From NCBI RefSeq assembly GCF_006345805.1, contig NW_021836152.1:124001-188000 (forward strand): a DNA stretch of 64,000 bases. Reading direction: 5' to 3'. The notes under the pieces were generated by a model, which searched no databases, was not told the origin of the DNA, and saw only the letters and a list, made by a program, of their open reading frames with translations. Positions 4,635 through 64,000 of this stretch are shown here, in pieces. The translations under genes and the position numbers were made by a program. Origin of the DNA: Octopus sinensis. Lineage: Eukaryota. The number at the start of each line of letters is the position of its first letter. Within the stretch, counting starts at the first letter, position 1.

Positions 4635-4726
<92 letters not shown>

Positions 4727-4844: not shown

Positions 4845-4897
<53 letters not shown>

Positions 4898-5881: not shown

Positions 5882-5920
5882 GTAGGTCGCCGGCTCTGTC
5901 CTTAAGTTGAACTCACAACA
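4894..5920 (+). mobile_element. Solo LTR (Gypsy-like), about 1027 bp
   Basis: Starts TGTTAC and ends CAACA (TGTT..AACA inverted ends), flanked by ATAT on both sides, non-coding, inserted in (TA)n. Confidence 0.7.
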
Positions 5921-9496: not shown

Positions 9497-9540
<44 letters not shown>

Positions 9541-9543
<3 letters not shown>

Positions 9544-10284: not shown

Positions 10285-10354
<70 letters not shown>

Positions 10355-10355
<1 letters not shown>

Positions 10356-10396
10356 GAGCGGCGAAATCGATTTTATATTTGATCCTTTCGGGGTTG

Positions 10397-10451
<55 letters not shown>

Positions 10452-10925
10452 GAGCGGCGAAATCGATTTTATATTTGATCCTTTCGGGGTTGATAAATTA
10501 CATCGGGGTCGATGTAATCATCTAGTCCCCACCACCAAAATTAGGAAAAAAACAGCCCATTTTATTTACAAGTAAGAATTATTATTTCCTCTACGCACAA
10601 CAGATTAGACTGGAACAAGAAAAGTTCTTAACATCGGGCTACAGCAAGTAACCTTATATGCGAAAAACCTTCCTAAGTTTCCTAGCTGTCCCTAATAACA
10701 CGGTTTCCTGGAGCTGCACTAAAGTAGGTTTTGCGCCTAGTTTTTCTATTTCTTTGTGAAACCCTTAGGGATAATTCGTAATGCACTTTTAGCTACAGGG
10801 ATACATTTTATCCACACATTTTCTAGCCTCTATAACTGAATGGCTAGACCCTGGTACTTTGCTATTTTCTGTATAGTTTCCATATTGATTTTCTCATCAT
10901 TTGGGATTGTAAAGTCAATTACCTG
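10355..10925 (+). repeat. Segment D (SINE remnant plus Dong 3' end); direct copies at 36731-37137 and 45527-46013
   Basis: GCGGCGAAATCGATTTTA...ATGGCTAGA(C/T)CCTGGTA is present three times. Confidence 0.92.
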
Positions 10926-14077: not shown

Positions 14078-15183
14078 TTAGTTATTTAGTTAATTTGGCT
14101 CAAAAGCAAATAGCAAGGCCATGTAGGGGGACATGGAGTTAAGTACAGGGTGGTGTTCATGTAAAGAGTTCAGGCCACTTGAGGTCCAGGGAGGCTTTGA
14201 ACAAAGCGGTCGTCGGCATCTTCACCATCTCGTCTGGCAGCTTGTTCCACGGATCCGCAACCCGGACGGAGAAAGCTCCTCTCCTTCGATTGAGATGAAA
14301 TCGTCGCAGGTAGAGCTTTTCGGAATGACCCCGCAGCCGACGCTCCGGAGCAGGAGTGAAGAACAGCTCTTTCGAGAGGTTACACTTCCCGCTTATGATG
14401 TTGTGGGCGAGAATGAGATCACCACGGCGGCGGCGTTTTTCAAGAGAACAAAGGTCGAGCGTCCTCAGCCTTTCTTCGTAGGACAAATTTTTGAGACCAT
14501 GAACCATGCGGGTAGCCAGCCTCTGGACTCTTTCGAGGTGCTTTATGTATTTGAGGAGATAAGGAGAAGAGGCTTGAATCCCATACTCCAATATAGGTCT
14601 CACCAGCGTGACATAGAGTGGTAGGAATATGGCTGATGTGAGCATTCCGAATGACCGTCGAATCAAAAACAGAATTCCGCGCGCTTTGTTGGCAGCATGG
14701 ACGCACTGGGCCGAAGGCGAAAAGGTGGAATCCACCAAGATACCCAGGTCCTTTACCTGATCGGTCCTCTCCAGCAGCAGACGACCCGGCTCGAAATCAA
14801 GTTGAGTTGCAGGAGTAGAGCCGACAGGCAGATGACAGCACTTTGACACGTTCAGACACAGGTCCCAATTGTTAGACCACTTCCAAATTTGGTGGAGGCA
14901 TCGACGAAGATCCTCTATACTACCGCGAGGAGCGACCAGTTTGATATCGTCGGCAAATAGAAGGGTGTGTTGCGTGAGGTCGTCGGGCAAGTCATTTATG
15001 AAGACTAAGAACAACAAGGGCCCAAGCACTGAACCTTGAGGCACGCCACTGCTCGCACTGGAGACGTCGGACCGCGAACCATTAACTTGGACTTGGAAGG
15101 AGCGATCTGAGAGGAAGGCACCAACCCATCGTACAATATCCGGATGGAAACTATATGCTTGAAGCTTGACAAGTAGTAGGCGG
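14078..15183 (-). mobile_element. CR1-group LINE, 5'-truncated 3' copy (same family as copies 1 and 2)
   Basis: Matches 18338-19028 until GTAGGCGG. It carries the ORF2 end (LKWPELFT*), a short 3' UTR and a TAACTAAATAACTAA tail. Confidence 0.9.
14157..15044 (-). CDS. CR1 ORF2 C-terminal RT fragment
   Basis: PQGSVLGP, FINDLP, FADD, KDLG, RPILEY, RRRRGDL, LRGH, WNKLP. Confidence 0.9.
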   Translation of the reverse strand: MPQGSVLGPLLFLVFINDLPDDLTQHTLLFADDIKLVAPRGSIEDLRRCLHQIWKWSNNWDLCLNVSKCCHLPVGSTPATQLDFEPGRLLLERTDQVKDLGILVDSTFSPSAQCVHAANKARGILFLIRRSFGMLTSAIFLPLYVTLVRPILEYGIQASSPYLLKYIKHLERVQRLATRMVHGLKNLSYEERLRTLDLCSLEKRRRRGDLILAHNIISGKCNLSKELFFTPAPERRLRGHSEKLYLRRFHLNRRRGAFSVRVADPWNKLPDEMVKMPTTALFKASLDLKWPELFT

Positions 15184-17407: not shown

Positions 17408-17779
17408 TAAATTACATGTGTGTGATACGGGGTGTACTTATGTATGTATAACAAGAAGATATATATACCAAATATTTGCAAAATATTAATAATTTCAGAT
17501 AATAATTCAGAATTCTCTAACATTTACATCTTCAATGGATCAGATCAGTAGCTTCAATTAGCATATTCAAAGGAGGGAGGGGGGGAAGATAAACCAAAAT
17601 TTTAAGATATTAAGTATTTCTGATATTCTAGTTTCAATGTTCAATAATTTCAATAGAACTTTATTTGATTTTTCCCTTCTCATTTCTATGGAACATATTG
17701 CTTATTACAGAAGTTGAATAGTTAATGTGTTTTATTGGGTAGTTTTTTTCAATAATTTCAAACAAAAACATTTTCATTA

Positions 17780-17888
17780 CCATATCACGTTGAAAGCATT
17801 GGTTCTTGTGCAATCACCGAAGTTAAGTAATGTCGAGCCTAGTTAGTACTTAGATGGGTGACCGCTTGAGAAACATAGGTGCTGTAAG
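17780..17888 (+). pseudogene. 5S rRNA pseudogene
   Basis: CCATATCACGTTGAAA..GGTTCT.GT.C.ATCACCGAAGTTAAG.AA.GTCGAGCC.GTTAGTACTT.GATGGGTGACCGC.TG.GAA..C.GGTGCTGTA aligns with invertebrate 5S (recalled). The first about 8 nt are missing and many changes are CpG transitions. Confidence 0.85.
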
Positions 17889-17902
17889 TGTCACACACTA
17901 CA

Positions 17903-18342: not shown

Positions 18343-20910
18343 CTAGGACAAATTTTTGAGACCATGAACCATGCGGGTAGCCAGCTTCTGGACTCTTTCG
18401 AGATGCTGTATGTCTTTGAGGAGATAAGGAGAAGAGGCTTGAATCCCGTATTCCAATATGGGTCTCACCAGCGTGACATAGAGTGGTAGGAATATGGCTG
18501 CTGTGAGCATTCCGAATGACCGTCGAATCAAGAACAGAATTCCGCGTGCTTTGTTGGCAGCATGGACGCACTGGGCTGAAGGCGAAAAGGAGGAATCCAC
18601 CAAGATACCCAGGTCCTTTACCTGATCGGTCCTCTCTAGCAGCAGACGACCCAGCTCGAAATCAAGTTGAGTTGCAGGAGGAGAGCCAACAGGCAGATGA
18701 CAGCACTTTGACACGTTCAGACACAGGTCCCATTCGTTAGACCACCTCCAAATTTGGTGGAGGCATCGACGAAGATCCTCTATATCACTGCGAGGAGCGA
18801 CCAGTTTGACATCGTCGGCAAATAGAAGGGTGTGTTGCGTGAGGTCGTCGGGCAAGTCATTTATGAAGACTAAGAACAACAAGGGCCCAAGCACTGAACC
18901 TTGAGGCACGCCACTGCTCGCACTGGAGACGTCGGACCGCGAACCATTAACTTGGACTTGGAAGGAGCGATCTGAGAGGAAGGCACCAACCCATCGTACA
19001 ATATACGGATGGAAACTATATGCTTGAAGCTTGACAAGTAGTAGGCGGTGGTTTACCGAGTCAAAAGCTTTGGCAAAGTCCAATAAAACGATGTCAACAG
19101 CATCACTATCATCGAGGATGCGCGTCACCAATTCTTCCATTACTAGTAAGTTGGTCAAGCATGATCTCTTCGGCACGAAGCCGTGTTGGGAATCAGTGAT
19201 CGAGGCTGTGTTTAGGAGGTGGAGCATCATACTTTTCTTAAGGATGGTTTCGAACATCTTGATGATTATTGATGTAAGGGAAACCGGTCGGTAGTTAAGC
19301 GGGTCTTCGCGGCTCATTTTCTTGAAAATTGGGCAGATTATCGCTGTTCTCCAGTCTGCAGGTATAACACCCGTCGCCAATGACATATTGAATAGTCTTG
19401 TTAAGGGCTCGCAGATGACCGGAGCCAACGCTTTGATAACCCGTGGGTGTATGCCGTCAGGGCCGTGACCCTTGTTGACATCGAGGCCTTGAATAACACG
19501 TTTGACTTGGTCCTGCGTGATGATCAATCGAAGCATTGGAGGTACCGATCTATCAAATGGAGGGGGTTCACGACCATCATCTTGTTTGAAAATAGTTGAA
19601 AAAGCCTCGGCAAATAATTGACTCTGTTGATAAGGGTCCTCAATCGATACGCCTGTTGAGTCTACCAACGTTGCAATCTGGTTGTTCAAGCGGGAATTCC
19701 GCTGGACATGGGCAAAGAAGGTTTTTGGATTGCTACTGGCATTTGCCGCGATTTTGTATTCATAACTGAAGCGTTCTTTCTTTTCAATTTTCACGGCTCG
19801 GTCTCGTTGAGTTTTGTACACCTCAAAAGCTGCAGTCGAATCCAGATTTTTGAATTCAGCCCAAGCAATATCTCTGAGTCGACGTTCTCGTTTAACCTTC
19901 TTCGTCACCCAGGGCTTGTGTTTCTTCCTCTTGGGAAGTCCAACGGGAACTGCCTGGTCAGTCAAACAGATTACATATGCTTTGAGGGATGACCATAGTT
20001 CGTCAACTGAGGACAACGTCATCAGGGAACGCCAGTCCAGAAGCGCGGAAGCCTCGGTTAGAATTTCAAGATTAATTGCAGAGAAGACTCTACGTGGCAG
20101 CGAAGTAATCGTGGGCGTGGAAAAAGTTGTGTGCATGACGAACTTCAGGACCGCATGATCACTCTTGGCAAGAGGGGCGCACACAGATACGTCTGACACT
20201 GATCTTGGATAGCGGGAGAATACCAGATCTAGCATGGATGGCTGCTGCCCAGACCGATGCCTTGTCGGATATTCAACATGTTGCGATAGAAAACAATCTT
20301 CAGCCACGTCAAGAAGGGCCTGGCCGAACCGGGAAGATGTTGTACAAATTGATGCGGGCCAATCGATCGTGGGAGCGTTGAAGTCGCCTAGTACCAAGCA
20401 GTCATGCGAAGCTGAAACGAATCTTATCGCTTCGAGTAGATGAGCATCGTCCTGGGGGTCGGCTAGAGGCGGCCTGTAGACAGCCAACACGGGCAGGCAA
20501 AACTCAGATAGGCTCAGCTTGCAATAGACGGCATCGAATTTGGTTGTAGGTTGAGCATTTGTGGGTAGAATACCGCAGGACGGTTTGTGCTCCGACTTAA
20601 CATACACAGCAACACCTCCACCTCGCCTTTTTCCTCTGTCACATCTGAAAAGGACGTAGCCCTGCAGGTGGATCTCTGAGTCCTTTACTGCTGGAGTCAG
20701 CCAAGTCTCGGTGATAGCTATCACATCAGGGGAGTCGCGTAGGGCCAGTGTAAATAGTTCACTGAACTTTGGGAATAAGGAGCACGAGTTGGTGTAGACG
20801 ATGCTGAGCTGTGAAGTCTGAGGGGCGGGAGTTGGGGAACAAGCAGAATAAAGGGCATCAGAGATAGCATCGTTGACGGGGGTATCAACTTCACTTCGAT
20901 TTGCCCTCAC
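18343..20910 (-). CDS. CR1 ORF2 (APE + RT), 855 aa, lacking the C-terminus
   Basis: Complete EN plus RT motifs QHGF, DFAKAFDSV, GVPQGSVLGP, FADD. Confidence 0.92.
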   Translation of the reverse strand: MRANRSEVDTPVNDAISDALYSACSPTPAPQTSQLSIVYTNSCSLFPKFSELFTLALRDSPDVIAITETWLTPAVKDSEIHLQGYVLFRCDRGKRRGGGVAVYVKSEHKPSCGILPTNAQPTTKFDAVYCKLSLSEFCLPVLAVYRPPLADPQDDAHLLEAIRFVSASHDCLVLGDFNAPTIDWPASICTTSSRFGQALLDVAEDCFLSQHVEYPTRHRSGQQPSMLDLVFSRYPRSVSDVSVCAPLAKSDHAVLKFVMHTTFSTPTITSLPRRVFSAINLEILTEASALLDWRSLMTLSSVDELWSSLKAYVICLTDQAVPVGLPKRKKHKPWVTKKVKRERRLRDIAWAEFKNLDSTAAFEVYKTQRDRAVKIEKKERFSYEYKIAANASSNPKTFFAHVQRNSRLNNQIATLVDSTGVSIEDPYQQSQLFAEAFSTIFKQDDGREPPPFDRSVPPMLRLIITQDQVKRVIQGLDVNKGHGPDGIHPRVIKALAPVICEPLTRLFNMSLATGVIPADWRTAIICPIFKKMSREDPLNYRPVSLTSIIIKMFETILKKSMMLHLLNTASITDSQHGFVPKRSCLTNLLVMEELVTRILDDSDAVDIVLLDFAKAFDSVNHRLLLVKLQAYSFHPYIVRWVGAFLSDRSFQVQVNGSRSDVSSASSGVPQGSVLGPLLFLVFINDLPDDLTQHTLLFADDVKLVAPRSDIEDLRRCLHQIWRWSNEWDLCLNVSKCCHLPVGSPPATQLDFELGRLLLERTDQVKDLGILVDSSFSPSAQCVHAANKARGILFLIRRSFGMLTAAIFLPLYVTLVRPILEYGIQASSPYLLKDIQHLERVQKLATRMVHGLKNLS

Positions 20911-23733
20911 ATCACTTTCCCTGTCAGCACTACAGCATGGGACCAGAGGTAGGACTTGATTATCTGTCCATCTTGGATTCGTAAACCCTTCTCTCCCATT
21001 TGTTTCCTCATCTTTAGCTCGGATATCAGGTTCCTCCGGCGAATTCTCTCTCTTAGTGAGTATTCCTCGCGAAAACCCATATTGGGGTCCTCCCAGGCAT
21101 GCGTCTGAGCTCTGTTCAGAAAGACTGAAGCCTCCCGATCAGAAGAAAAGATTACCCTTATTGGGCGTGGTCTAGTATCTGCGGTTGGATTCGCTTGGAA
21201 TCTTCCTAGCCGAGCGACCTTAAGAACACTGACATTTTCGTTCACAGAGAACAATTTTCCAACCAAAACGGAAACAAAATTAATGTCATCTTTTAGGCGG
21301 TTTATGCCTGTATCACAGGTGGATTCAGCCTTGCCATATATTATTGCCGATCTTGAGTGGGCAAAAAGTTCTCTACTATGAGCTGCGGTATTCGATTCTT
21401 CATTGGAGGATTTCGAAAGGGTGGTTTCATAGCCATCGGACTTATGTCGGCCTGTGGGGTCGATCGGAATGGATTTAGTGGTCATAATTTTCCCGCCTGG
21501 TTTGGAACTGCACTGCCTCTTCTTCGGTTTGGGGGAGCACCACTCCCCAGATGAACCCACATCGAGATCGTTCAGAATTGGTTGAGCAATGGCATTAATG
21601 GGAAGGACAGGTGAGGGAGAATCCATACGGATTTTATCGTGATCAGGTTTCATAGCCAAATCTGCCCCTCTGGAGTTTTGACTACGTTTCTTCTTTTGGG
21701 GAGAACAACGGTCTTCAGGTGGGTTTGAGTCTACGCTCCTCGAACTAGGTTGGGGAACCTCCGGGACCGAAAAGGCAGATGAGGAAGAATCTGCACAGGA
21801 ACGATCATGTGCAGGAACGACCGCCGGTTCCTTCGCCTTCTTTGGCCGCTTCGATTTTGTTCCCTTCGGTTTGGACGTCTCCAGGGAAGAAATCAAGGGT
21901 GACCCTGCGTCAACAGGAGACCGTTTATCGTGGTCAGGTTTCATAGCTAAATCCGCCCCACTGGAGTTTTGACTACGTTTCTTCTTTTGGGGAGAACAAC
22001 GGTCTTCAGGTGGGTTTGAGTCTACGCTCCTCAAATTAGGTTGGGGAACCTCCGGGATCGAAAAGGCAGATGAGGAAGAATCCGCACGGGAACGATCATG
22101 TGCAGAAACGACCGCCGGTTCCTTCGCCTTATTTGGCCGCCTCGATTTTGTTCCCTTCGGTTTGGACGTCTCCATGGAAGAAATCAAGGGTGACTCTGCG
22201 TCAACAGGAGACTGTTTATTCAGTAAGAGAGCAACAACAGACTTTAAGTGCTCAACCTCTTGTTTGAGCAACAGCAACTGTTCGTTGAGCTGACTATTGG
22301 TAGGACCATCATCTTGATGAGAAGCCCTACTTGCAGATCTCAGTTTCGATGCGTAGGTAGCTGACATGATGGATGGTTGACTAAAAACAATCTTCTATGG
22401 GCTCTAGGAGTAGTAGTCGGGACACACAAGACAGTGGCTGGTTGTTTAAGTATGTTCTAAATGTTAAGTCAAGTGAAGTAAACAACAAAGCTTTGGTCCT
22501 AAAATAGACAACAATCCTCTTCTCAAAATATTTCACACAACTTTCTCTGTAAGAAATTAGCATTGTTTACCTTTTTGTATAGTGGTGACACAATAAATCA
22601 CACACGCGTACACATTCATAATACTTACATACATACATGCATACATACATACACACATACATACATACATACATACATACATACATACATACATACATAC
22701 ATACATACATACATACATACATCAAGCTTACCTGCATACATACGTCCATCCATCCACATATAAATGCAACAAGCTTACATGTCTACATAGATACCAGTGG
22801 TTGAGGCAGGGGTGCTGCCCTAGTTGCCCGGGTAACACCCTTTCTGGCACATCCGACCCAAAAAAATTGCCGGGACCAAGATTTTTCAGAGCATAACTGT
22901 TTTATATGTTTCTGGTCTGCTACAACATAGAATACATGAAAATGTGTCCATTTCTTACAAATTGCGATTCCCGACTAACATAGTAATTTTTTGGAAACAA
23001 AAAAGATCTTGGGTCCCCACTGCATACACACAGACGCATTCAAACAATCTTAAGCAAACACATATATGCATATTTATATATCGTTTTAGAAGCTTCGAAG
23101 AAACTATAAGCTTATTCCCAAGCACCCATCTCTGCATGCACTGTAACTACTAGAAACTGCAGTGAGCTTATTAAAATGAAATACGTAATTCATGTCCTCT
23201 AAAAACACACACATACACCCAAACAGAAAGGCACACAATGACACATAGACAAAGACACACATGTTATGGTTGCAACTTGATTCCGAAATATGCCACATTT
23301 GTTTACTCAACGAAGCAGGGACGTGTATCTTTTAGTCCTGTTAGGGATCTAAACACTTTTGCGCAATCAAAGACATACTAACGAAGGAGACTTCCTGCTG
23401 CAGTTTTTGAGAGACTTACCATCCTCCCTGACTCATACCTTTGTTCTCTCATGAAATTTTCAACTTTGTGTTTTGCCGATCGCAGGCTATGTGCCTTGTC
23501 GTTCGAAGGCTGTGCGTTTTGGCTGCGTCTGAGGAAAAATAGAAGGAGAGAACCTTTGCACATGGCAATTCCGACTCCCTCCCCAAACAGCCAATACATT
23601 CCTGCCAAACAAACAACTATTCTACATCATAAGTATTACAAAAGAGAGATGTCACAACAAAAGCAGTTATATCGCACTCCCAGCCATTGGAGGGCTGTTG
23701 ATTCTCCTGTGATCACCCGGCCTTTGAAATAGT
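19177..23733 (-). repeat. Arm A' of the inverted duplication (mirror of 1-4583)
   Basis: See arm A. Confidence 0.97.
20907..22367 (-). CDS. CR1 ORF1 protein, 486 aa (7 aa differences from copy 1)
   Basis: Comparison of the two translations in the ORF track. Confidence 0.88.
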   Translation of the reverse strand: MSATYASKLRSASRASHQDDGPTNSQLNEQLLLLKQEVEHLKSVVALLLNKQSPVDAESPLISSMETSKPKGTKSRRPNKAKEPAVVSAHDRSRADSSSSAFSIPEVPQPNLRSVDSNPPEDRCSPQKKKRSQNSSGADLAMKPDHDKRSPVDAGSPLISSLETSKPKGTKSKRPKKAKEPAVVPAHDRSCADSSSSAFSVPEVPQPSSRSVDSNPPEDRCSPQKKKRSQNSRGADLAMKPDHDKIRMDSPSPVLPINAIAQPILNDLDVGSSGEWCSPKPKKRQCSSKPGGKIMTTKSIPIDPTGRHKSDGYETTLSKSSNEESNTAAHSRELFAHSRSAIIYGKAESTCDTGINRLKDDINFVSVLVGKLFSVNENVSVLKVARLGRFQANPTADTRPRPIRVIFSSDREASVFLNRAQTHAWEDPNMGFREEYSLRERIRRRNLISELKMRKQMGEKGLRIQDGQIIKSYLWSHAVVLTGKVM

Positions 23734-32099: not shown

Positions 32100-33660
32100 T
32101 TTTGGGCTAAATCTACATACAGTACAGTTTGTCTAGGGTCCTTCTAAAGCGGTACGCCAGTTCACCTCCAGGGGTGGTGTCAACGAACATGACACTCTGG
32201 TATTTATGGCTATCATATCAAGAGTTGGCCTTCTCTATTTTCTTTTTTGTCCTTTCTATAGTGTTCCATGGCTTGTTTCTATAGAGTGGGCAAGTCCCAT
32301 TCCTATCATTACATAATATATTATCAAATTTCTTCATGGCTCCTTTGTATACTCTGATCCTTTCTTTATGGCTGCAACCTGAGAACTGCATGCGGTGAAT
32401 GAAATATTGTATGTGTCTCTTTAACTCTGTGGTCTCGCACATGCGTGACACATTTCTCATTATTCTGACGAGGTCTGCCATCAAAATATTAAATTTGGCA
32501 TTGTCCGCAATGGCTGAGTTCCGGTGGATCAAGTATTTTGAGGCCATAGGTTTGGCATAGTATGAATGAAGGATTTGGGTTTATTAGTCACAATTTTAGC
32601 CAGAGTTCAGTGTCTATTACTGGTAGTCTATGGTTGGGGTGTTTATTGGGGTAGTCTATTGTGACCTTAATACTCTGGTGGATGGAGTTAGCTATTTGCT
32701 GGATGATCTCCATAGTATTAGTTTCTAATACTATATCAACATTACTTTCTTGTGGGGGTGCCCTTGCCACTATGTTGATATCATCAACATAGCGAGAGTA
32801 CACGTTTACGAGTATGGAGTTCTGTGTTGGGCGTTCTTTAAGCCTTCTGTCTCACTATACCATGAAAAGGTTAGCCACATCACCAGCGATACTAACGCCG
32901 ATGGCTGCCCCCTCGACCTGGGCATATATTTTATTATTAAACTGAAACGTGTGGCCTTTTAGGGTAACTCTTATACTAGCTCCTGGTGCATGTGCGATCA
33001 TTTTCTTTACCTGATGGACATTTGCGGGGCTCCGTATGGCTCTGGTCCATCCGCGCCATCTTTCTATACGTGTCTTCCTAGCCATAGAAGTAATTGTGGG
33101 CGGTCTACCTCTTAAACATCTACTGGGGCAGAAACTACTAAGATTATGTTTATCTAAGTATTCATTATTACATGTCAGTCTAAGTAGGAGGCCCAGTTCT
33201 TCTGTGTTGACATTACGGAACTCCACCTGGCTCTCGTTGACATCTCCACGCACTTCTCTACCGAAAAATCTACGTCGATCGATGAGTATAGGGATACCAC
33301 ATCCGTGCTACCCACCATACATCCTGTCAGGTCACAAGTGTTGTTACAGTCGTTGATCCTGCTGAGGAGATCTGCTGTGCTGTCACAAACATCAGGTGAC
33401 ATCCGGATTATAGGGCGTATGATCATTGAGAGGAAGTAGGAGATTCTGTAATTGCTAGCGATATTCGCTCCACAGACTGGTCTTGTTGGTGGTCCTGCTA
33501 TAGGGTCAGTAATTACTTTATGGTCCTTGCGAAGTCCATACAGTGCCGGGATATCATTGTTCCAGGCTTTGAAATTATTTGCTGTACGTTTCTGGGGTCC
33601 CAGAACAATTGTCCACATCATCATGTGGGAGTTGAGGAACTTTTCTCTCTCCTCATGCGC
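32100..33660 (-). pseudogene. Penelope-like element 3, decayed RT
   Basis: LYGLRKDHK, DVVSLY.SI, Q..G.AIG, YSRYVDD, LPVIDT, HFLIH..SA, with stops and frameshifts. Confidence 0.8.
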
Positions 33661-34071
33661 CTGTACAGTTGTTATTCTTGTATTGGCGATATGAGGTTGT
33701 ATTTATATACATGAACGTATATAAACAGAAGACACAAATATTACAGGCATCCCCGCACATACACACATTAAATAAACATAGACGCACATAGAGATATAAG
33801 CATACGCAAATGACAACATACAATACAAATACAAAATGGCTGACGGTTAGTAAGGAGAGACACAAATAAGAAAGAAGAAAACAAAGGACCACTGATGCAG
33901 TCACAGGAATGTGACGAAAGAACTCTGGCCGAAATAAGATTAAGATTAATGTAAAAAATAAATAACACTGAAGAAAATAACACCACATATATAGTGCGTG
34001 TGTTTTTATTGGCTAAACTGGCAATATGACCATTCCGAAATATAACAATATATATATATATATCTATATAT

Positions 34072-35157
<1,086 letters not shown>

Positions 35158-35266
35158 ATATTATGTGTACCGCAAACACTACTCTTTCTGTCGAGGGCAT
35201 ATATTTATAGGGATTATTTATAATTGACAAAACACGGTGAGCTTTCATAAACTTTAAACTTATGAA

Positions 35267-35336
<70 letters not shown>

Positions 35337-35339
35337 TGT

Positions 35340-35779
35340 ATATGCATATACATACACATAAGATGATTGCTCCATCTTGGCAGATGGTTTCCGTTTTCTT
35401 TTGCTTCCTGTTTGTCAAAGACATTTCTGTGTTTCCATTCATGACCTCTCAGTTGAAATTTAGTCTCTCTGCCGATGTGCCTTCTTTGAAGAGTAGGTGA
35501 GAGACGAAAGTTGTTGTAGCCTACCGTGCGCGTCCATTCTTCCACCACCGTAGGAACTTCAGCAGATGAAATGCCGAATGTGGTCATCTTAAAGACATAA
35601 CTGTGCATCATTTGATTATAGTGAGAGGCACCTATAGAATACCAGTACTACTCTGAGTCTCTGTGACTAGAACCTAGTGGCAGACCGAACAGAGAGGACT
35701 TTTAATCAGGTCAAACAGCAGGTTTTCCATCAGTAGGCACCTCTGATGCAACCAAGGGATCTAGATATATGGTCATACA

Positions 35780-36217: not shown

Positions 36218-36330
36218 CATCATTATCATTATTATTATCATCATTATTATTATTATTATTATCATCATTATTATTATTATTATTATCATCATTATTATTA
36301 TTATTATATTATTATTATTATTATTATTAT

Positions 36331-36639
36331 TCTATGTTTGACTTTTGCTTTATATTTGTACAAGTTGGCTCCAAGTCTCACCCAGAGACCTCAAGAGACA
36401 ACAGGCTGGAAGTTCATGTTGTTGTTATGTCTAGTGTGCCATATATTTGGGGGAAAATTTTTGCTGTTGTACTAATGAATGTCTAAAAAAAAAAATTTTT
36501 TTTCTTTTTTTTTTCTTTTTAAAACCGGAAATTATGTTTGTTTTAAACCTTGAGATTACATAGAAAGTATTTTGCGTAGGATATAAGCAGTTCCCATGAG
36601 CAATATCTTTTGAATTTCTGCCATTTTTGGGTTTTCTGG

Positions 36640-56289: not shown

Positions 56290-56450
56290 GGAGGCGCAAT
56301 GGCCCAGTGGTTAGGGCAGCGGACTCGCGGTCGTAGGATCGCGGTTTCGATTCCCAGACCGGGGGTTGTGAGTGTTTATTGAAAATTCTCCACGACCTCT
56401 GGGAGAGGGTGGTGGCGATCCCTGCTATACTCTTTCGCCACACCTTTCTT
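56290..56450 (+). mobile_element. tRNA(Arg)-like SINE
   Basis: GGCGCAATGGCCCAGTGGTTAGGGC..CTCGC..GGTTTCGATTCCC with A and B boxes, followed by non-tRNA body. Confidence 0.8.
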
Positions 56451-56662: not shown

Positions 56663-56770
56663 AATGTGAGGTATATTTGCCATCTCAATATGGCTTACTG
56701 TAGCTATAAGCTACAGTAACACCCACCCTTAGTGCTTAGCCATATTGAGATGGCAAATATACCTCACATT
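56663..56770. repeat. Foldback MITE remnant: perfect 33-bp inverted arms and an inner 11-bp hairpin
   Basis: 56663-56695 is the RC of 56738-56770; TTACTGTAGCT-ATA-AGCTACAGTAA. Confidence 0.9.
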
Positions 56771-56894
56771 GTCGTGCAGTTACTGTTTATACCTCGTTCA
56801 GAGATTTATTATTGATAATAATAATAATAATAGTAATAATAATAACGATTATTATTATTATTATTATTATTATTAATATTATTATTATTATTAT

Positions 56895-57060
56895 TCTATG
56901 TTTCACTTTTGCTTTATATTTGTACAAGTTGGCTCCAAGTCTCACCCAGAGACCTCAAGAGAAAACAGGTTGGAAGTTCACGTTGTTGTTATGCCTAGTG
57001 TGCCATATTTTTGGTTGTTTTTTTTTGGTGTTGTACTAGTGGATATCTAAAAAAAAAATT
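56895..57060 (-). mobile_element. Dong-type 3' UTR fragment in (TAA)n
   Basis: Matches 58613-58770. Confidence 0.8.
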
Positions 57061-57106
57061 GTTTGTTTTCAACCTATGCACGTGATGTCTATTCTGCTTT
57101 ACTTAC

Positions 57107-57223
57107 CAAAGCAAATTCTACCGTTCAACTCGAACCCTGGACTGCAGGCACATGTGAAGGATCCTGGTGTGTTGGTGCAATCCTCATTTACCCCGCATGG
57201 CCAACCAGTGCACTCGTCTATGT
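57107..57223 (-). CDS. Ca-binding EGF exon, 117 bp, phase 1-1 ([39 protein letters not shown])
   Basis: TTTCCAG/GTAAGT sites, six cysteines and the D-I-D-E-C..C.N..GS(F/Y).C consensus. Confidence 0.88.
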
Positions 57224-57327
57224 CTGGAAAGTAAAAAAATTTTATTGCGTGAATATAATACTTATGTTTCATCATCAATCATCCTCATCAAACTTCCTCA
57301 TCAATCATCTTATGTTTCATCATCATG

Positions 57328-57360
<33 letters not shown>

Positions 57361-57520
57361 AATCATCAATCATCATCATCATCGTCATAATCATCTTCAT
57401 CATCATCATCATCATTCATCATCAATCATCAATCTTCAGTAATTATCATCATCATCATCATCATCCCCATCATCAACATCATCATCATTATTATCTTTAT
57501 TATTTTTATTATTATCATCA

Positions 57521-57584
<64 letters not shown>

Positions 57585-57653
57585 CATTATTATTATTATC
57601 TATTATTATTATAATAATAATAATAATAATTATTATTATTATTATTATTATTA

Positions 57654-57689
<36 letters not shown>

Positions 57690-57740
57690 ACACGAAACCA
57701 GTTACACATACACACGTGATGTCTATTCTGCTTTACTTAC

Positions 57741-57857
57741 CAACGCAAATTCTACCGTTCAAATCGAACCCTGGACTGCAGGCACATGTGTAGGATCCTG
57801 GTGTATTGGTGCATGTCCCCTGTGCCCCGCATGGGTCTGCTGTGCACTCGTCTATGT
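57741..57857 (-). CDS. Ca-binding EGF exon, 117 bp, phase 1-1 ([39 protein letters not shown])
   Basis: TTTCCAG/GTAAGT sites, six cysteines and the cbEGF consensus. Confidence 0.88.
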
Positions 57858-58046
57858 CTGGAAAGTAAAGCAATTTTATGGCATGGATATAATACTTGTT
57901 TCATCATCAATCATCCTCATCAATCTTCCTCATCAATCATCTTCATCAATTATCACCAATCATCATCATCATAATCATAATCAACCATCATCATCAATCA
58001 TCAATCATCATTAATCATCATCATCATTATTCATCATCTTCATCAA

Positions 58047-58085
<39 letters not shown>

Positions 58086-58299
58086 GATCCTCATCATCAT
58101 CAACATCATCGACATCATTATCATCATTATTATTATTATTATTATTATTATTACTTTTTTTTTCTTCTTTCAAATTTGCTTCCATTTCTTGCCGAGTGTC
58201 TTCCCGACTCCTAGGGCAAAGAAACTCATAGTATACATTGGTAGGCCATTAAACCAAACTCAATAGTTCGTTCATTTTTTTTTTTTTTTAAGTTAAATT

Positions 58300-58550
58300 G
58301 AAATACATGAGCAGCAACAGTTCTCATATCGACAATGCTCTTCTCAATATGTGTGATGTACCAGTTAAGACAATCTTTTGCACTTCTTGCAGGGATGGTA
58401 AGCCAGGGATCATTCTCATATAATTTTCGGTTCCCTTCTTGATCATTCCTAGTGCTCCTACGATCACTGGTATTGTAACCGCCTTGAGATGCCACATTTT
58501 CTCAATTTCAATGAGTAGGTCTTTACATTTTCTGAGCTTGTCAAACTCTT
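58300..58550 (-). pseudogene. Older Dong-type C-terminal fragment
   Basis: KDLLIEIEKMWHLKAVTIPVIVGALGMI..LTGTSHILRRALSI*. Confidence 0.75.
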
Positions 58551-58576
58551 TATTATTATTATTATTATTATTATTA

Positions 58577-58612
<36 letters not shown>

Positions 58613-58614
<2 letters not shown>

Positions 58615-60599
58615 TATGTTTGACTTTTGCTTTATATTTGTACAAGTTGGCTCCAAGTCTCACCCAGAGACCTCAAGAGACAACAGGGTTGGAAGTTCAT
58701 GTTGTTGTTATGCCTAGTGTGCCATATATTTGGGGGGTGGGGATGTTGTACTAATGAATGTCTAAAAAAAAAAAAAGGTTTTTTTTTTCCTTTTTTTTTT
58801 TTTTCTTTAAACCGAAAATTATGGTTGTTTTAAACCTTGAGGTTACATAGAGAGTATTTTGCGTAGGATATGAGCAGTTCCCATGAGCACTATCTTTTGA
58901 ACTTCTGCCATTTTGGGGTTTCCTGGTATCTGAGTTAGGTAGCTATCAGCCCCTTTTGCTATCATTCCCAGGGCACCTATGACAACAGGTATTGTTTTAG
59001 TCTTCAGCTTCCACATTTTGCTGATTTCTATTTCAAGATCTTTATATTTGCTCAGTTTTTGGTAGGTCCTGACAGATACGTTTATATCGATTGGGACAGT
59101 CATATCAATGAGGAGGCATGTTCTTTGTTTGAAGTCTTTCAATATGATGTCTGGCCTATTTGCATCTATCTTCCTGTCAGTTTGAATGGTGAAGTTCCAG
59201 AGGAGTGAGATGTGGTCATTTTCAAGCACTGGGGGTGGTTTGTGTTCCCACCAGTTTTTTTCATGGGGCAAATCCAGGTTTTTACAGATTACCCAGTGAA
59301 TATATTGTGCAGCTCTATCGTGCCTGTTGAGATACTCTGTAGGCGCTAGAAGACTGCACTTGGAGACCACATGGTCAATGGTTTCTTTTTGTTGCTTGCA
59401 TACACGACACGTTGGACTGCTTCTGATCTTTAATATGTTGGCCTGGTAGTTTCTTGTTGGTAGGCATTGATCTTGAGCTGCTATGATAAACCCCTCTGTT
59501 TCAGATTTTAAGCCAGAGGCCATTAGCCATTGATGGGTCAGGGCTTTGTCGATATCTGCATTATTTGCTCTCTTTGGGTATTTGCCATAGAGAGGTTTTT
59601 CTTGCCATTTATTATTCAGAATATCTAAGGCCGCAGTTTTGGCACGGGTTTTCATGCGCCTAGCTTTTTCTGTGCTTGTTTCTTGTATGTCTATCTCTAA
59701 TTCCGAAATTGGTTGTATTCGGAATTCACTTAGATATTCCTTTGCCTGTTTTGTGACTGAGTATGATGCTTTCTTGTTTTCATGTTTTGAGACAAGTTTT
59801 AACATCCAGTCCTCAGAGTTTTTCAGGTAGGTGTCTAGGCCAATTGTAGCAATCTTCATTGTTATTGCCAGTTGCAAAAGACCACGGCCTCCCTCTTTTC
59901 TTGGCAGATAGAGTCGTTCTGTATCTGCCTTAGGGTGGTGCATTCTATGCATTGTCAACAGTTTCCTTATTTTTCTGTCGAGCTGACATATTTCAGTAAT
60001 TGACCAGTTAACAATATTGAAACTGTAAGTCACGACTGGTATAGCTAATGCATTGATTGCTTCGATCCTGTTTCTTGCATTCAACTCTGTCTTGAGTATT
60101 GCTCTCACTCTTCGATAGCATTCTCTCCTGATCCTTTCCTTCATCTCTGAATGCCTTATTCCGTTCCCTTCAATTACCCCTAGGTACTTGTAGCTCTCCG
60201 CTGGGTCTAGTTCTTTTATGACATTCTGTTGGTCAAGGTTAACGTTAGATGTTTCTGTCATTTTTCCTTTGATAAAGGTAGCCTTTGCACATTTATCGAG
60301 GCCGAATTGCATTCTGATGTCGTCACTGAATTGTTTGACTATCGCTAGTAAGCCCTTGAGTTGTTGATCATATTTTGCAAAAAGCTTTAAATCATCCATG
60401 TAAACGAGATGATTTATATTTTTATCAAACATTTTATACCCGTACTGCGCGTCATTGAGCAGCTTTGAGAGAGGTATTAAGGATAAACAAAAGAGGAGTG
60501 GTGACAGTGAGTCACCCTGGAAAATGCCACACGAAATTTTTACATCACCAGCATTTAGGGATTCACTGTCACTGTTCAGAGTTAGTGTGGTTCTCCATG

Positions 60600-60600
<1 letters not shown>
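58613..60600 (-). mobile_element. R4/Dong-clade LINE, 5'-truncated, both ends in (TAA)n
   Basis: Open frame from about 60600 (GIFQGDSLSPLLF). Motifs YMDD, CRVC..ETIDHVVSKC, RHD, RPDI..D (REL), KYKDL. (AAT)n tail. Confidence 0.92.
58843..60432 (-). CDS. Dong RT C-terminus + CCHC finger + restriction-like endonuclease
   Basis: 529-aa ORF in the track; the frame stays open a further about 56 codons upstream. Confidence 0.9.
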   Translation of the reverse strand: MFDKNINHLVYMDDLKLFAKYDQQLKGLLAIVKQFSDDIRMQFGLDKCAKATFIKGKMTETSNVNLDQQNVIKELDPAESYKYLGVIEGNGIRHSEMKERIRRECYRRVRAILKTELNARNRIEAINALAIPVVTYSFNIVNWSITEICQLDRKIRKLLTMHRMHHPKADTERLYLPRKEGGRGLLQLAITMKIATIGLDTYLKNSEDWMLKLVSKHENKKASYSVTKQAKEYLSEFRIQPISELEIDIQETSTEKARRMKTRAKTAALDILNNKWQEKPLYGKYPKRANNADIDKALTHQWLMASGLKSETEGFIIAAQDQCLPTRNYQANILKIRSSPTCRVCKQQKETIDHVVSKCSLLAPTEYLNRHDRAAQYIHWVICKNLDLPHEKNWWEHKPPPVLENDHISLLWNFTIQTDRKIDANRPDIILKDFKQRTCLLIDMTVPIDINVSVRTYQKLSKYKDLEIEISKMWKLKTKTIPVVIGALGMIAKGADSYLTQIPGNPKMAEVQKIVLMGTAHILRKILSM

Positions 60601-60631
<31 letters not shown>

Positions 60632-62067
60632 CATTATTATTATTATTATTATTATTATCATTATTATTATTATAAGAACTGCCCACATCCTACACAAAAA
60701 CTATCAATTGAATAAATTACGTAAACAAAGCAACCCATAGACACAAGATTCACTTTATACAGCAATTACCCATGGAAATAAAAAAAAACTTCCAGCAGTA
60801 ACCCATTTAACCAACACATTACATAGACAATGCACAATACAAGCAGTAATGCAAAAAACACTGCACCACATCTTAAGAGAAAAAATAACTGGCGCAATAC
60901 AATATCGGGAAGTTTCCACACTCCCAACAACAGAAAGGAACACACGATGTTGCACATACCCACCCCAGCAACACGGTGGTGTAGCAAGAAATGCAGTAGA
61001 AATCTGCCTTAAGCTACCAATAATAATCATTAAAGTAATAATCGTTATATCTGAATCCTTAACACTCACACTATCAAAAGAAAAAAACAGCCATTTTAGG
61101 AACGGCCCATAAGACACGATTAATTCAATACTACAACCTAAACAACTATCCAATGAAATAAACTACCACAAGCAAGCTGGATAACCTAGGTATTACACAA
61201 TCAACACACAATACAAATACTAATTCGACAAAACACTGCATTACAATCCAACAATATGGAGATGTAGCCGTTGCTACAGTAGAAATTTGCCTCAAGCTAC
61301 CAAATGTTGAACAAGAACAATAAGAACAAGACTAGTAATCATTTCTCCTATAATCACAAGGCCTGGCATTATGAAGTGCGGCTTAAGTCGATTAGATCGA
61401 CCCCGGTACTCAACTCGTACTTAATTTATCGAACTCGAAAGGTTATAAATCAAAGACAATTTCTGCGAATAAAACATTTATTTTATATACATATATAGAT
61501 AAGGCCTAATATTTTCTTAATATTTTCTATTTTATATCCAAATATAACAACCAATGGTCTCGTTTAAAATTTCCTTTTTCTTTCGTATCACAATCCTTTG
61601 AAGAAAAGCATCGCTATTTCTTCCATTTTCTTTTTCCTGTTTTATATTCTAATATATGCAAATGAGCGTCGTGTCGTCTCGTTTTCTTTCCACAATATTT
61701 GATCAGTTTGTGTCCATTTTGATGTTGTATATAATCCCTTTGCCACAGCAACTGAGCTGAGAAAGGTCTGACTTCTGTTAAAAGAACATGGTGCATCTAC
61801 CTTATTCTACAATAGGCACAAGGCCTGATATTTTGGTGGGTAGGTCGGGGTCAGTCGATTACATCGACACTAATACTTGAATAGTGCCCATTTCATCGAC
61901 TCTGCCAACTCATCACCTTAATAATAACAACAACCACAACAGCGACGAGGACGGGGAGGAGGACGAGGACGAGGACTACGACGATGATGACGTTAATGAT
62001 GATGATGATGATGATGATGAAACACAAGTGTTATATCCATGCAATAAAATTGTTTTACACAGAAAGT

Positions 62068-62138
<71 letters not shown>

Positions 62139-62139
62139 G

Positions 62140-62660
62140 GATCTACATACAATGGAAGCTATGCACACACTATAGAATAACACCAGAAAAAAGATGGTAT
62201 AAGTACACGCCAGAAAAGGTCACAAAAATGAGAAGGCAACAATACACAGATAGAGAAATTAAGGCCAATTAGGCCAGATATAGTTGTCAAAGATCATGAA
62301 GGGAAAAAATGCATTCTGATTGATGTATCAATACCAACAGATGACAACGTTTCTCTAAAAGAAATGGAGAAACTTTCAAAATACAAAGACCTGGAAACAG
62401 AGGTATCTCGAAAGTGGAGTCTAAAAGCAGAACCAATTCCTCTGATAGTAGGCGAATTAGGTATGATAAAAAATATTCAGACAAATACATAGCAAAAATG
62501 CCAGGACTAAATAATATATATGACATACAGAAAATAGCAGTCGTAGGCACCGCACACATCCTACGCAAAACACTTTCAATACAGTAAAAGTAAGAGCGTC
62601 ACAGCAAACCAGAGCACATACCCAAGGCACACAGAGCTGTACTTGGTAGTACAGAAAAAG
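62140..62660 (+). pseudogene. Dong-type 3' fragment
   Basis: RPDIVVKD..CILIDVSIP..SKYKDLE..GTAHILRKTLSIQ*. Confidence 0.8.
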
Positions 62661-62780
62661 CACGTGATAACAATAACACTATGATGATGATAATAATAAT
62701 GATGATGACGATGATGATGATGATGATGATGATGAAACATAGGTGTTATATTCACGCAATAAAATTGTTTTACTTTCCAG

Positions 62781-62897
62781 ACATAGACGAGTGCACAGCA
62801 GACCCATGCGGGGCACAGAGGAAATGCACCAACACACCAGGATCCTACACATGTGTCTGTAATCCAGGGTTCGAGTTCAGCGGAACAACATGCATTG
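62781..62897 (+). CDS. Ca-binding EGF exon, 117 bp, phase 1-1 ([39 protein letters not shown])
   Basis: TTTCCAG at 62774-80, GTAAGT at 62898 and six cysteines. Confidence 0.9.
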
Positions 62898-62978
62898 GTA
62901 AGTAAAACAATAGACAACATCACGCGTATAGGTGTAACTGGTTTCAAGTTATAATAACAAAAAATAATTATAGTAATA

Positions 62979-63027
<49 letters not shown>

Positions 63028-63103
63028 TAATAACCATAATAATAACAAAAATAATAATAATAATAATAATAATAAAAATAATAACCATAATAATAATAAC
63101 AAA

Positions 63104-63141
<38 letters not shown>

Positions 63142-63196
63142 TAATAACCATAATAATAACAAAAATAATAATAAATAATAATAATAATAATAATAT

Positions 63197-63288
<92 letters not shown>

Positions 63289-63314
63289 AAGAAGAAGAAG
63301 AAGAAGAAGAAGAA

Positions 63315-64000
63315 TAACAATCAGGGAGGTACGTACTTTAAACTTACAACTCAAAATGTACGAAAACCTACACGTGCAAAACAATGTGACAACAGAAATG
63401 AACGGACCGGTACCCTACGAAAATGACGACCGTCAAAATAATGGGCCGGACGTTGTTCCTCATGTCCCGCAAGTAAAACCCAAAAGACATAAATGGACAC
63501 GTGAGGAATACATTTCTATCCTACACGCATACTTCACAGCTCTACACAAAAAATGAAAACACAACAACGCATACATATAAAATATGGAAAAAAAATAACA
63601 TAAATATAAACTTGGATACAGCAATGAACCCTAATAAATTAGCTAACGTACGAAGATACATTCTCAACGCAAAAAAGTATCAGAAATAGAAATAGAACAC
63701 CTAAAAGAAAAAATACACCAGGAAAATGTAGATAGAAGCCACACAACAATGCCCAATAATATAAACACTGAAACAGTAAAACACGAAGACAAACGTAACA
63801 TTCCCAACAAACACGATGTAAACAAAAAAACAACAAACCCAGACCGTAGGATGCATAATAATACACGACGAACAGCAAGCCAAAACACGGCAAATAATCA
63901 TATAAATAAGAAAGAAAGCGACACAAATCTAAAACCTGGAAACAACGAAGGGGAGCCTAATGATTATGATAATATAAAAAGTAAAATAATCAAAGAACTG
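63315..64000 (+). mobile_element. 5' part of an R4/Dong-type LINE after (TAA)n/(GAA)n
   Basis: N-terminal motif KRHKWTREEY..HAYF and NKLANVRRYIL, with stops and frameshifts. Confidence 0.65.

Follow-up and report, generated by a model that had tools for sequence, protein, structure and literature searches.

EGF modules encoded by phase 1-1 exons have undergone tandem duplication and shuffling in multi-EGF genes of the fibrillin, Notch and LDL-receptor type, following the class 1-1 module rule, and exons of this kind preserve the reading frame when a unit is gained or lost. Intronic inverted repeats that come in pairs, such as inverted Alus, cause exons to be skipped, RNAs to circularise and transcripts to be edited by ADAR. 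At docking and selector sites of the Dscam type, competing RNA pairing picks among tandem alternative exons. Tracts of (TAA)n are a known target of Dong elements, as seen in Bombyx, Anopheles and the snail Biomphalaria (PMC3812793), and the repeat library of Octopus bimaculoides includes a Dong element (PMC9115989).

The locus described here was analysed within a window of 64 kb, the whole stretch of DNA under study. It is best read, with a probability of about 0.7, as a small section of an array in which cbEGF exons and their introns are repeated in tandem and which belongs to a multi-EGF gene or the remnant of one in a microsatellite- and LINE-rich invertebrate genome. It looks like the outcome of ordinary exon duplication and rearrangement and not like a dedicated exon copy-number machine. 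The 64-kb window contains exactly three intact cbEGF exons, all within 5.8 kb, a count that applies to the window since the array may extend past its end at 64000. The exons and their surroundings are given below, where m and p denote the minus and plus strand and P and Q two types of acceptor flank:

57066-57106, minus strand: mQ donor flank; in the unit alignments its first ~35 nt match the other units, followed by a LINE 3' fragment
57107-57223, minus strand: cbEGF exon mQ, 117 bp, phase 1-1, Pfam EGF_CA 38.6 bits
57224-57690, minus strand: mP-to-mQ intron without the mP donor flank, in sense order (AAT)n, degenerate (GAT)n, acceptor flank
57691-57740, minus strand: mP donor flank, GTAAGTAAAGCAG...GTGTTA, running into (AAT)n
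57741-57857, minus strand: cbEGF exon mP, 117 bp, phase 1-1, Pfam EGF_CA 39.3 bits
57858-58152, minus strand: region upstream of mP, with acceptor flank (57858-57905), degenerate (GAT)n (57906-58120) and (AAT)n (58120-58152)
61905-62020, plus strand: (AAC)/(GAC/GAG)/(GAT)n tract ahead of the plus P remnant
62021-62074, plus strand: exon-less plus P remnant, from the acceptor flank to ...TTGTTTTAC (62058), then 'acaga', AAGTTA and (TAA)n (62075-62137)
62681-62780, plus strand: (GAT)n and acceptor flank of pQ, from flank alignments
62781-62897, plus strand: cbEGF exon pQ, 117 bp, phase 1-1, Pfam EGF_CA 40.5 bits
62898-63316, plus strand: region downstream of pQ, with donor flank (62898-62950), a (TAA)n-rich tract and (GAA)n (63270-63316)

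All three exon translations exceed the curated gathering threshold of Pfam EGF_CA (PF07645), which is set at 27 bits. The motif D[IV]DEC occurs three times where 0.03 occurrences are expected by chance, and each exon combines DIDEC, six cysteines and CTNTPGS[YF]TC, the signature of a calcium-binding EGF domain. The exons share AG/GT borders of the form cag/AC ATA GAC ... TGC NTT G/gtaagt, 117 nt apart in every copy, which are canonical splice sites as read from the sequence only. The 117-bp phase 1-1 cbEGF exons that the initial annotation had recognised are therefore real, and the border it had placed at 57223 is right to within 1 nt. For 28 random changes, the chance that no stop codon arises and all 18 cysteines are retained is 0.008, and it falls to 0.0004 if D, D, E and N are retained too. 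Because this outcome is improbable under random change, the variation among the exons has evidently passed through selection. No host gene was identified. The remaining 57 kb of the window contain no further exon matching any of 253 multi-EGF proteins, and database searches returned no protein of the same species.

Upstream of each exon there is a (GAT)n tract followed by an acceptor flank of ~46 bp, and downstream a donor flank of ~53 bp leads into (TAA)n, so that the order of the unit and the lengths of its flanks are as first described. The acceptor flank occurs four times, against an expectation of zero. The earlier view that the cassettes are bounded by (AAT)n describes the general layout but fails for mQ, where the LINE 3' fragment at 56891-57065 intervenes: the donor flank is cut after ~35-41 nt, with the junction between about 57065 and 57072, and the LINE fragment is followed by (AAT)n/(ATT)n over positions 56800-56890. 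The mP-mQ intron is made up of (AAT)n (57470-57690), degenerate (GAT)n (57272-57470) and an acceptor flank of 46 nt (57224-57271). An interrupted stretch of (GAT)n has been duplicated along with the exons, as 57265-57311 and 57897-57943 are 98% identical and have specific interruptions in common. Four cassettes had been proposed, of which three do contain an exon; the plus P cassette at 62019 retains the acceptor flank only. There, position 62058 is joined straight to the end of the donor flank ('acaga' and AAGTTA), an internal deletion of about 175-190 bp has removed the exon together with most of the donor flank, and no EGF signal is present at the remnant. The repeat match between 61963-62058 and 62678-62773 amounts to 81%. 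The (TAA)n-rich tract downstream of pQ has a higher-order period of ~57 bp. Intron flanks are about as conserved as exons, and a complementarity of 14-15 bp that brackets the exon and includes one compensatory change could hint at a function beyond simple descent.

The minus-strand units mP and mQ are tandem duplicates (446 bp at 85%, with a period of 634 bp), and inverted alignments of 467 bp (85%) and 260 bp (83%) connect the plus unit with the minus units, which confirms the claim that exon-plus-intron units have been duplicated both in tandem and inverted. Tandem and inverted alignments alike extend through the flanks into the microsatellites. Because they do, the layout common to the cassettes goes back to the duplication of one unit, and the three or four cassettes are evidently copies of one ancestor and not independent instances of a design. 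The initial annotation had seen in them an exon copy-number system; descent from a single duplicated unit explains the common architecture instead.

Identities between the exons are 88.0% for mP and pQ, 85.5% for mP and mQ and 79.5% for mQ and pQ, and they are unevenly distributed: across nucleotides 1-58 pQ is nearer to mP (3 differences against 13), across nucleotides 59-117 mP is nearer to mQ (3 differences against 11), and changes specific to one lineage occur in clusters (P = 5e-6 and 0.001). The acceptor flank of pQ is closest to that of mQ (3 differences in 46 nt), and the P and Q types are two transitions apart, one of them CpG/TpG. In the (GAT)n-proximal sequence the copies group by strand. 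Judged from these patterns, the copies are mosaics with conversion-like patches. The mirrored block of two cassettes that had been proposed therefore stands as an inverted alignment only; clean mirroring of P and Q is not supported, because so few changes separate the two types, the pQ exon is 88% identical to mP against 79.5% to mQ, and the (GAT)n-proximal grouping follows the strand.

The cassettes are interspersed with remnants of LINEs:

56891-57065, minus strand: LINE 3' end fragment, 88-96% identical to 58567-58790 and 36285-36504
58153-58546, minus strand: LINE fragment A, 5'-truncated and Dong/R2-like, C-terminal end of the ORF and 3' UTR, between two (AAT)n tracts
58613-60600, minus strand: 5'-truncated 2-kb LINE with a 585-aa ORF (58846-60600) and 3' UTR (58613-58845)
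60673-61045 and 61046-61335, plus strand: two short LINE 3' fragments, each starting in a '..GTAHIL..' ORF end according to the translations
62138-62680, plus strand: LINE fragment B, 5'-truncated, frameshifted and Dong/R2-like, from the RLE region to the 3' UTR

In the 585-aa ORF the distal RT motifs are accompanied by a CCHC finger and by RPD..D..K, a restriction-like endonuclease (RLE) motif. Its RT assignment is based on a Pfam RVT_1 match, and CRVC..H....C and RPDIILKD...LIDMTVP...K were read in the translation. R2 proteins are the closest solved relatives (E 4e-16), in an alignment that spans RT, finger and RLE. In tblastn searches, 58318-58551 in fragment A matches the C-terminus of P0259 at 73% and 62150-62584 in fragment B matches P0265 at 56%, while the fragments at 60673-61335 show weak DNA matches to other LINE fragments. 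The 64-kb window contains seven Dong-like fragments; those checked against the repeat table adjoin (TAA)n-type tracts, and all local copies are 5'-truncated. On either side of the 2-kb copy there is (AAT)n (58547-58612 and 60601-60672), fragment B lies between (TAA)n and (TAA)3(GAT)n, and (TAA)n is likewise found at the insertion junctions of 58153-58546, 62138-62680 and 56891-57065. At least five LINE insertions lie at (TAA)n tracts, and their orientation follows the tract. These features point to a (TAA)n-targeting LINE of the R2/R4/Dong-like, restriction-like endonuclease type, and the proposal that the (TAA)n edges serve as Dong targets is borne out by its repeated insertion there. The accompanying proposal of retroelement-assisted copying did not hold. 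Fragments A and B, which adjoin mP and pQ, have no DNA similarity and 53% amino-acid identity, whereas the cassettes are 85-88% identical; because the LINE fragments beside one cassette and another show no relationship in their DNA, the LINEs did not carry or copy the exons but arrived later and independently.

Exons, LINE fragments and AT skew all change strand near 60.6 kb (the sign of the AT skew changes at ~60.5 kb), and this common switch points to an exon array that was either inverted in part or duplicated in inverted form. Of the spacer between the two P units, LINEs make up 3045 bp, microsatellites 501 bp and other sequence 569 bp. The arms of the inverted repeat measure 170-460 bp at 85-88% identity and are 4.8-5.4 kb apart. 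It had been suggested that an inversion could switch which exons are used. However, exchange between the inverted arms would flip only the 4.8-kb LINE-filled spacer and leave the orientation of the exons unchanged, so that the arms are unable to act as an exon switch. An invertible DNA switch was considered and rejected on these grounds, the cassettes themselves being the only long inverted repeats; no recombinase was found among the ORFs scanned.

These observations can be arranged into a history of the array. An ancestral unit of ~634 bp was evidently copied several times. Its exon was 117 bp long and in phase 1-1, and its intron ran from a short donor flank through (AAT)n and degenerate (GAT)n to an acceptor flank that was likewise short; every copy looks packaged alike because the microsatellites belong to the copied intron. 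Patches were then exchanged among the copies, as their mosaic structure shows, probably by gene conversion or by unequal crossing-over with other members of the array. One portion of the array is reversed. A segment may have been inverted, or the portion may have arisen by inverted duplication, for which template switching within a repeat is one conceivable route; the arms originally faced each other head to head, no more than about 1 kb apart. The RLE-type LINE subsequently inserted independently at least five times in (TAA)n, expanding the spacer to 4.1 kb, and one plus-strand unit lost its exon through the deletion of ~180 bp. Any given transcript would splice at most one orientation, with the other arm as a passenger. 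On this evidence, nothing appears to indicate a mechanism that evolved to regulate exon number.

Four other explanations were weighed against this history. The first, which takes up the regulatory idea of the initial annotation, is a functional sense-antisense design, in which both arms are part of one primary transcript and the antisense cassette pairs with the sense exon and its splice sites, controlling exon inclusion, back-splicing or A-to-I editing. Such pairing is physically possible according to the predicted duplexes of antisense pQ with mP or mQ, at -266 and -265 kcal/mol compared with -67 kcal/mol for shuffled partners, although energies of this size arise from any inverted repeat of 85-88% identity. 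The 4-kb spacer contains no obvious 5' exons, so a transcript of either arm would probably cross the other, and each exon lies within a stem of 14-15 bp that spans both splice sites. The arms form a single pair, which gives the design no independent replication, and the loss of the exon from one of the two plus units, together with the LINE debris in the spacer, resembles decay and not maintenance. A functional design of this kind is consequently considered unlikely.

It is quite unlikely that the strand switch is an assembly artefact in which the plus arm, or a segment between long (TAA)n tracts, has been mis-oriented or mis-joined and all units really lie on one strand. Mis-joins typically occur where an assembly meets young LINE copies or long, near-pure tracts of (TAA)n and (GAT)n. 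However, the window contains no N, copies that differ by 12-20% represent distinct loci and not a folded-back read, and the coherent switch of exons, five LINE fragments and AT skew fits an old rearrangement followed by oriented insertions.

The P-before-Q order on both strands, reading away from ~60 kb, would also be expected of two separate, ordinary genes arranged head to head, each with P-then-Q EGF exons and transcribed outward from a shared centre. Phase 1-1 exons need upstream exons, however, and the 4.1 kb between the arms are accounted for by 3.0 kb of LINE, 0.5 kb of microsatellite and 0.57 kb of non-coding-looking sequence; the plus P unit, moreover, has no exon, which makes this arrangement very unlikely. 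Least probable is the cassette as mobile cargo, moved by LINE 3' transduction (LINE, (TAA)n, cargo, new (TAA)n) or dispersed as a transposon-borne repeat family: the succession of LINE 3' end, (TAA)n, (GAT)n, exon and (TAA)n at mP and pQ is the trace expected of 3' transduction, but the same LINE 3' end would then be joined to each cargo, whereas fragments A and B differ as described, mQ has no LINE ahead of it, no cassette or flank recurs in 58 kb of TE-rich sequence in which real TEs do, and the metagenome collection yields no match to a 28-mer that bridges flank and exon.

The preferred reading, a partly inverted tandem array of cbEGF exons, can be set against the systems introduced above. 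As in Dscam-type clusters, the exons are similar and in tandem, and their conserved intronic flanks are able to base-pair, the 3' end of the preceding intron being complementary over 14-15 bp to the 5' end of the following one. Unlike there, a single docking site is absent, nothing points to mutual exclusivity, and the copies are only three and related by descent. A mutually exclusive cluster of the Dscam type was rejected, since each unit holds both halves of the complementarity and the 117-nt phase 1-1 exons can be joined in series with the frame kept.

The inverted repeat would form a long, imperfect duplex if co-transcribed, as inverted Alu pairs do, but its arms contain an exon with both splice sites and not just intronic TEs. 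The LINE copies resemble Dong/R4-clade and R2-type elements in the succession of RT, CCHC finger and PD..D..K-type motif, with R2 proteins as the best solved relatives, and also in being 5'-truncated, oriented by their tract and bordered by (TAA)n on both sides; the database relatives of the ORF are unnamed proteins at most 64% identical, and the name Dong denotes likeness and not phylogenetic placement. The array differs from known multi-EGF genes in that its introns consist almost entirely of (AAT)n and (GAT)n, part of it is inverted and one unit is exon-less. It resembles them in encoding one cbEGF domain per 117-bp exon, with phase 1 at both ends and AG/GT borders, and in the 85% identity of neighbouring units, introns included, with mosaic, conversion-like patches.

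Three cbEGF exons lie in the window, two on the minus strand (mP and mQ) and one on the plus strand (pQ), with P and Q denoting the type of acceptor flank:

57741-57857, minus strand: exon mP, 117 nt
57107-57223, minus strand: exon mQ, 117 nt
62781-62897, plus strand: exon pQ, 117 nt

Each of these exons is preceded by ...TTTCCAG, is directly followed by GTAAGT, has phase 1 at either end, translates into one complete cbEGF domain and exceeds the Pfam EGF_CA gathering score. A window-wide scan for the D[IV]DEC-coding motif found three occurrences against 0.03 expected, and no further cbEGF exon was detected in the 64 kb with a six-cysteine pattern, an HMM derived from the exons or tblastn searches using 253 multi-EGF proteins. 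The window has a G+C content of 37.6%, contains no N, and carries at least 197 tandem-repeat rows and numerous LINE ORFs. Word-indexed and exhaustive representative database searches for the host gene with mP and mQ as queries returned only generic multi-EGF proteins of at most 60% identity and no matching protein from the same species; the top four by identity (P0112, P0208, P0132, and P0145) appear to be unrelated. A 28-mer over the acceptor-exon junction had no match in the metagenome contigs scanned.

Random placement of the 28 inferred changes on the ancestral exon left no stop codon and retained 18 of 18 cysteines in 0.8% of trials, a fraction that fell to 0.04% if retention of the calcium-binding D, D, E and N was required as well. 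The rarity of this outcome shows that exon variation has been filtered by selection for the EGF fold, acting on the exons where they now stand or on the donors of converted patches. Outside the cysteines and calcium-binding residues, exon changes are mainly non-synonymous (9:2, 10:3, and 14:3 codons), and the intron flanks show roughly the same degree of conservation as the exons.

The initial annotation described the exons as cassettes bounded by microsatellites, and this description is largely accurate. In sense order, degenerate (GAT)n is followed by an acceptor flank of about 46 nt (model sequence TTATATYCAYGCMATAAAATTNYTTTAC), the exon, a donor flank of about 53 nt and (TAA)n. Correction was needed for the plus-strand P exon, the mQ donor flank and the independence of the units. 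The plus-strand P cassette, taken to be an exon unit, consists of an acceptor flank only (62021-62058; one of four flank matches) and lacks the exon. Its flank stops at 62058 and is followed by “acaga” and then by AAGTTA(TAA)n, in which AAGTTA corresponds to the final six bases of the pQ donor flank, exactly abutting the repeat junction. This unit has thus lost its exon by deletion, together with the greater part of its donor flank. The donor flank of mQ is interrupted after approximately 35-41 nt by a 175-bp LINE 3' fragment. Independence of the units is contradicted by alignments that run into the microsatellites and include specific interruptions common to the copies (family D7, 98% over 47 nt): the two minus units, spaced at a period of 634 bp, match each other for 446 bp at 85%, and the plus unit aligns with them over 467 bp at 85% and 260 bp at 83%. 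The repeated object is consequently an exon plus its intron, the latter composed nearly entirely of (AAT)n and (GAT)n. A literature search for microsatellite-flanked exon duplication gave no relevant match.

The repeats bordering the units have features of their own. At 62951-63316, the (TAA)n tract 3' of pQ exhibits a higher-order period of about 57 bp, with TAA runs punctuated by AAAAATAATAACCATAATAATAACAAAAATAA, and it terminates in about 47 bp of pure (GAA)n. From 63320 onward follows A-rich sequence with short ORFs, which possibly represents the 5' portion of a further element on the plus strand. Shortly past the final EGF unit, downstream when read in the minus sense, a perfect inverted repeat of 33 nt encloses a 42-nt loop (56663-56770); it might be the remnant of a MITE or an element that forms a hairpin.

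A two-cassette block was initially proposed to have been duplicated in mirror image. The order P then Q is indeed present on both strands; a clean block duplication is not borne out, as the exons group differently from the flanks. The P and Q labels reduce to ATATCCATGC vs. ATATTCACGC, which differ by two transitions, including one at a CpG. Overall exon identity is 88.0% for mP-pQ, 85.5% for mP-mQ, and 79.5% for mQ-pQ. Along the unit, the acceptor flank of pQ groups with that of mQ (three differences in 46 nt), whereas in exon nucleotides 1-58 pQ groups with mP (three differences vs. 13); mP and mQ group together, with pQ as the outlier, in nucleotides 59-117 and also in the proximal part of the donor flank. 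Strand-wise grouping is seen at the sequence adjoining (GAT)n and at one flank site. Compared site by site, the copies are therefore mosaics. The copy-specific changes are strongly clustered: 12 of 14 mQ-specific changes fall within exon nucleotides 17-44 (57180-57207; P = 5e-6) and 10 of 11 pQ-specific changes within nucleotides 76-114 (62856-62894; P = 0.001), with the cysteines kept in both patches. These patches look like conversion tracts from EGF exons outside the window, which would imply further members of the family beyond its borders.

All exons and LINE pieces left of about 60.6 kb are on the minus strand and all those to the right are on the plus strand, and a sign change in AT skew coincides with this switch. 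The two P units are separated by a 4115-bp spacer, of which LINE accounts for 3045 bp, microsatellite for 501 bp and other sequence for 569 bp. Since this spacer is mostly LINE, the two arms (the minus units and the plus units) stood head to head within about 1 kb before the insertions. Both an inverted duplication across a short spacer and the inversion of part of a P-Q-P-Q array would account for the arrangement. A mis-join within one of the long repeats is a possible cause of the inverted arm. A simple assembly fold-back is unlikely because the copies differ by 12-20% and the sequence has no gaps. Two independent head-to-head genes are unlikely as well, given that the spacer is devoid of plausible 5' exons. 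A transcript using one of the arms would probably carry the other as antisense intronic sequence.

The spacer LINE contains a minus-strand ORF (58846-60600) with distal RT motifs, a C-x2-C...H-x4-C finger and the restriction-like endonuclease signature RPDIILKD...LIDMTVP...K. Its closest solved relatives are R2 retrotransposon proteins, with an alignment running from RT through finger to endonuclease. A database search with the ORF yielded a top match of 64% identity and no match from the same species. Truncated at its 5' end, this copy is bordered on either side by (AAT)n. Seven related LINE fragments were identified in the window by tblastn with database relatives, five or six of them within 56.9-62.7 kb, and each fragment checked against the tandem-repeat table has a (TAA)n-type tract next to it where a 3' tail would be expected. 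Insects and a snail carry Dong elements that target (TAA)n (PMC3812793), and a Dong element is listed for Octopus bimaculoides (PMC9115989); the local LINE would fit the Dong type. Between the fragment upstream of mP (58153-58546) and the one upstream of pQ (62138-62680), no DNA similarity was detected, and their amino-acid identity is only 53%. The two fragments were thus inserted independently, once the cassettes were already separate, with homologous (TAA)n tracts as their targets, which rules out LINE 3' transduction, or carriage of the exons as TE cargo. The LINE is a colonist of the EGF introns and not the copier of the exons.

Other elements were observed elsewhere in the window. Two inverted copies of an APE-plus-RT LINE (1-4583 and 19177-23733) are 98.9% identical, both with a 291-bp tandem duplication within ORF1 (1541-2127 and 21633-22219), and a third fragment (14473-15183) is 96% identical; this family is probably young and recently active. 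Exact look-ups of the ORF1 products of the two copies found no record. A repeat of about 2 kb is present in two inverted copies of 97-99% identity (4647-5884 plus 9515-10282 vs. 33306-35354), one of which is split by a 3.6-kb insertion with RT ORFs (6010-8729). A full-length 5S rRNA match on the plus strand (17772-17890; Rfam RF00001, 69 bits, E 1.5e-12), isolated amid repeats, may represent a 5S gene, a pseudogene or the head of a SINE derived from 5S. Short SINE-like pieces are located at 56300-56400, 61340-61440, 61810-61900, and 10301-10494; one includes a tRNA-like stretch without an ARAGORN call, and their motifs may resemble those of cephalopod SINEs.

The symmetric phase of EGF modules renders gain or loss of a unit frame-neutral, and the mosaic exons are evidence that units recombine. 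Nothing, however, distinguishes the suggested copy-number system from the concerted evolution that is usual for tandem exon arrays. An inversion switch, also suggested initially, fails on geometry: exchange between the inverted arms flips the spacer only and yields hybrid arms, leaving the exon strands unchanged. Pairing at the RNA level, both bracketing an exon and between sense and antisense copies, is the only aspect of potentially greater weight. The predicted duplex of antisense pQ with mP or mQ has an energy of about -266 kcal/mol vs. -67 for shuffled partners, a value comparable to that expected of any inverted repeat of 85-88% identity. In addition, the last ~15 nt of the upstream intron (TGCTTTACTTTCCAG) are complementary to the exon end plus the first ~12 nt of the downstream intron (TTGGTAAGTAAAGCA), forming a predicted stem in each unit:

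57858-57873 with 57729-57744: mP stem, 14-15 bp, spanning both splice sites
57224-57239 with 57095-57110: mQ stem, 14-15 bp, spanning both splice sites
62765-62780 with 62894-62909: pQ stem, 14-15 bp, spanning both splice sites

RNAalifold includes the terminal stem in its consensus for the three units, and one of the pairs varies among them as CG, UG and UA. Compared to shuffles retaining GTAAGT and CCAG, its stability was unusually high for mP (P = 0.018) and pQ (P < 0.0005) and less so for mQ (P = 0.07), values to be read with the shared descent of the units, which are not independent, and with the part of the match accounted for by the splice-site consensus. The whole-cassette fold showed no stability excess over shuffles (z = 0.12), and the terminal stem alone stands out; the predicted exon-bracketing stem is a lead only. 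It is very improbable that this stem, together with a co-transcribed inverted unit, sets the number of EGF modules in the mRNA or makes the exon a substrate for A-to-I editing. If true, in a cephalopod genome, the inverted exon copy would constitute a ready-made complement for editing.

The structure at this locus is real and non-random, and its explanation is ordinary. It combines tandem duplication of a symmetric-phase EGF exon together with its intron, sequence exchange among the duplicated units, a single inverted rearrangement, the loss of one exon by deletion and repeated insertion of the (TAA)n-targeting LINE. The locus provides a local example of near-pure microsatellite introns turning into landing pads for site-specific LINEs, as well as of array decay, with one exon deleted and one donor flank truncated. 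Taken at face value, it would suggest a device in the genome for adding, dropping or flipping protein modules, whereas the evidence favors a combination of familiar processes.
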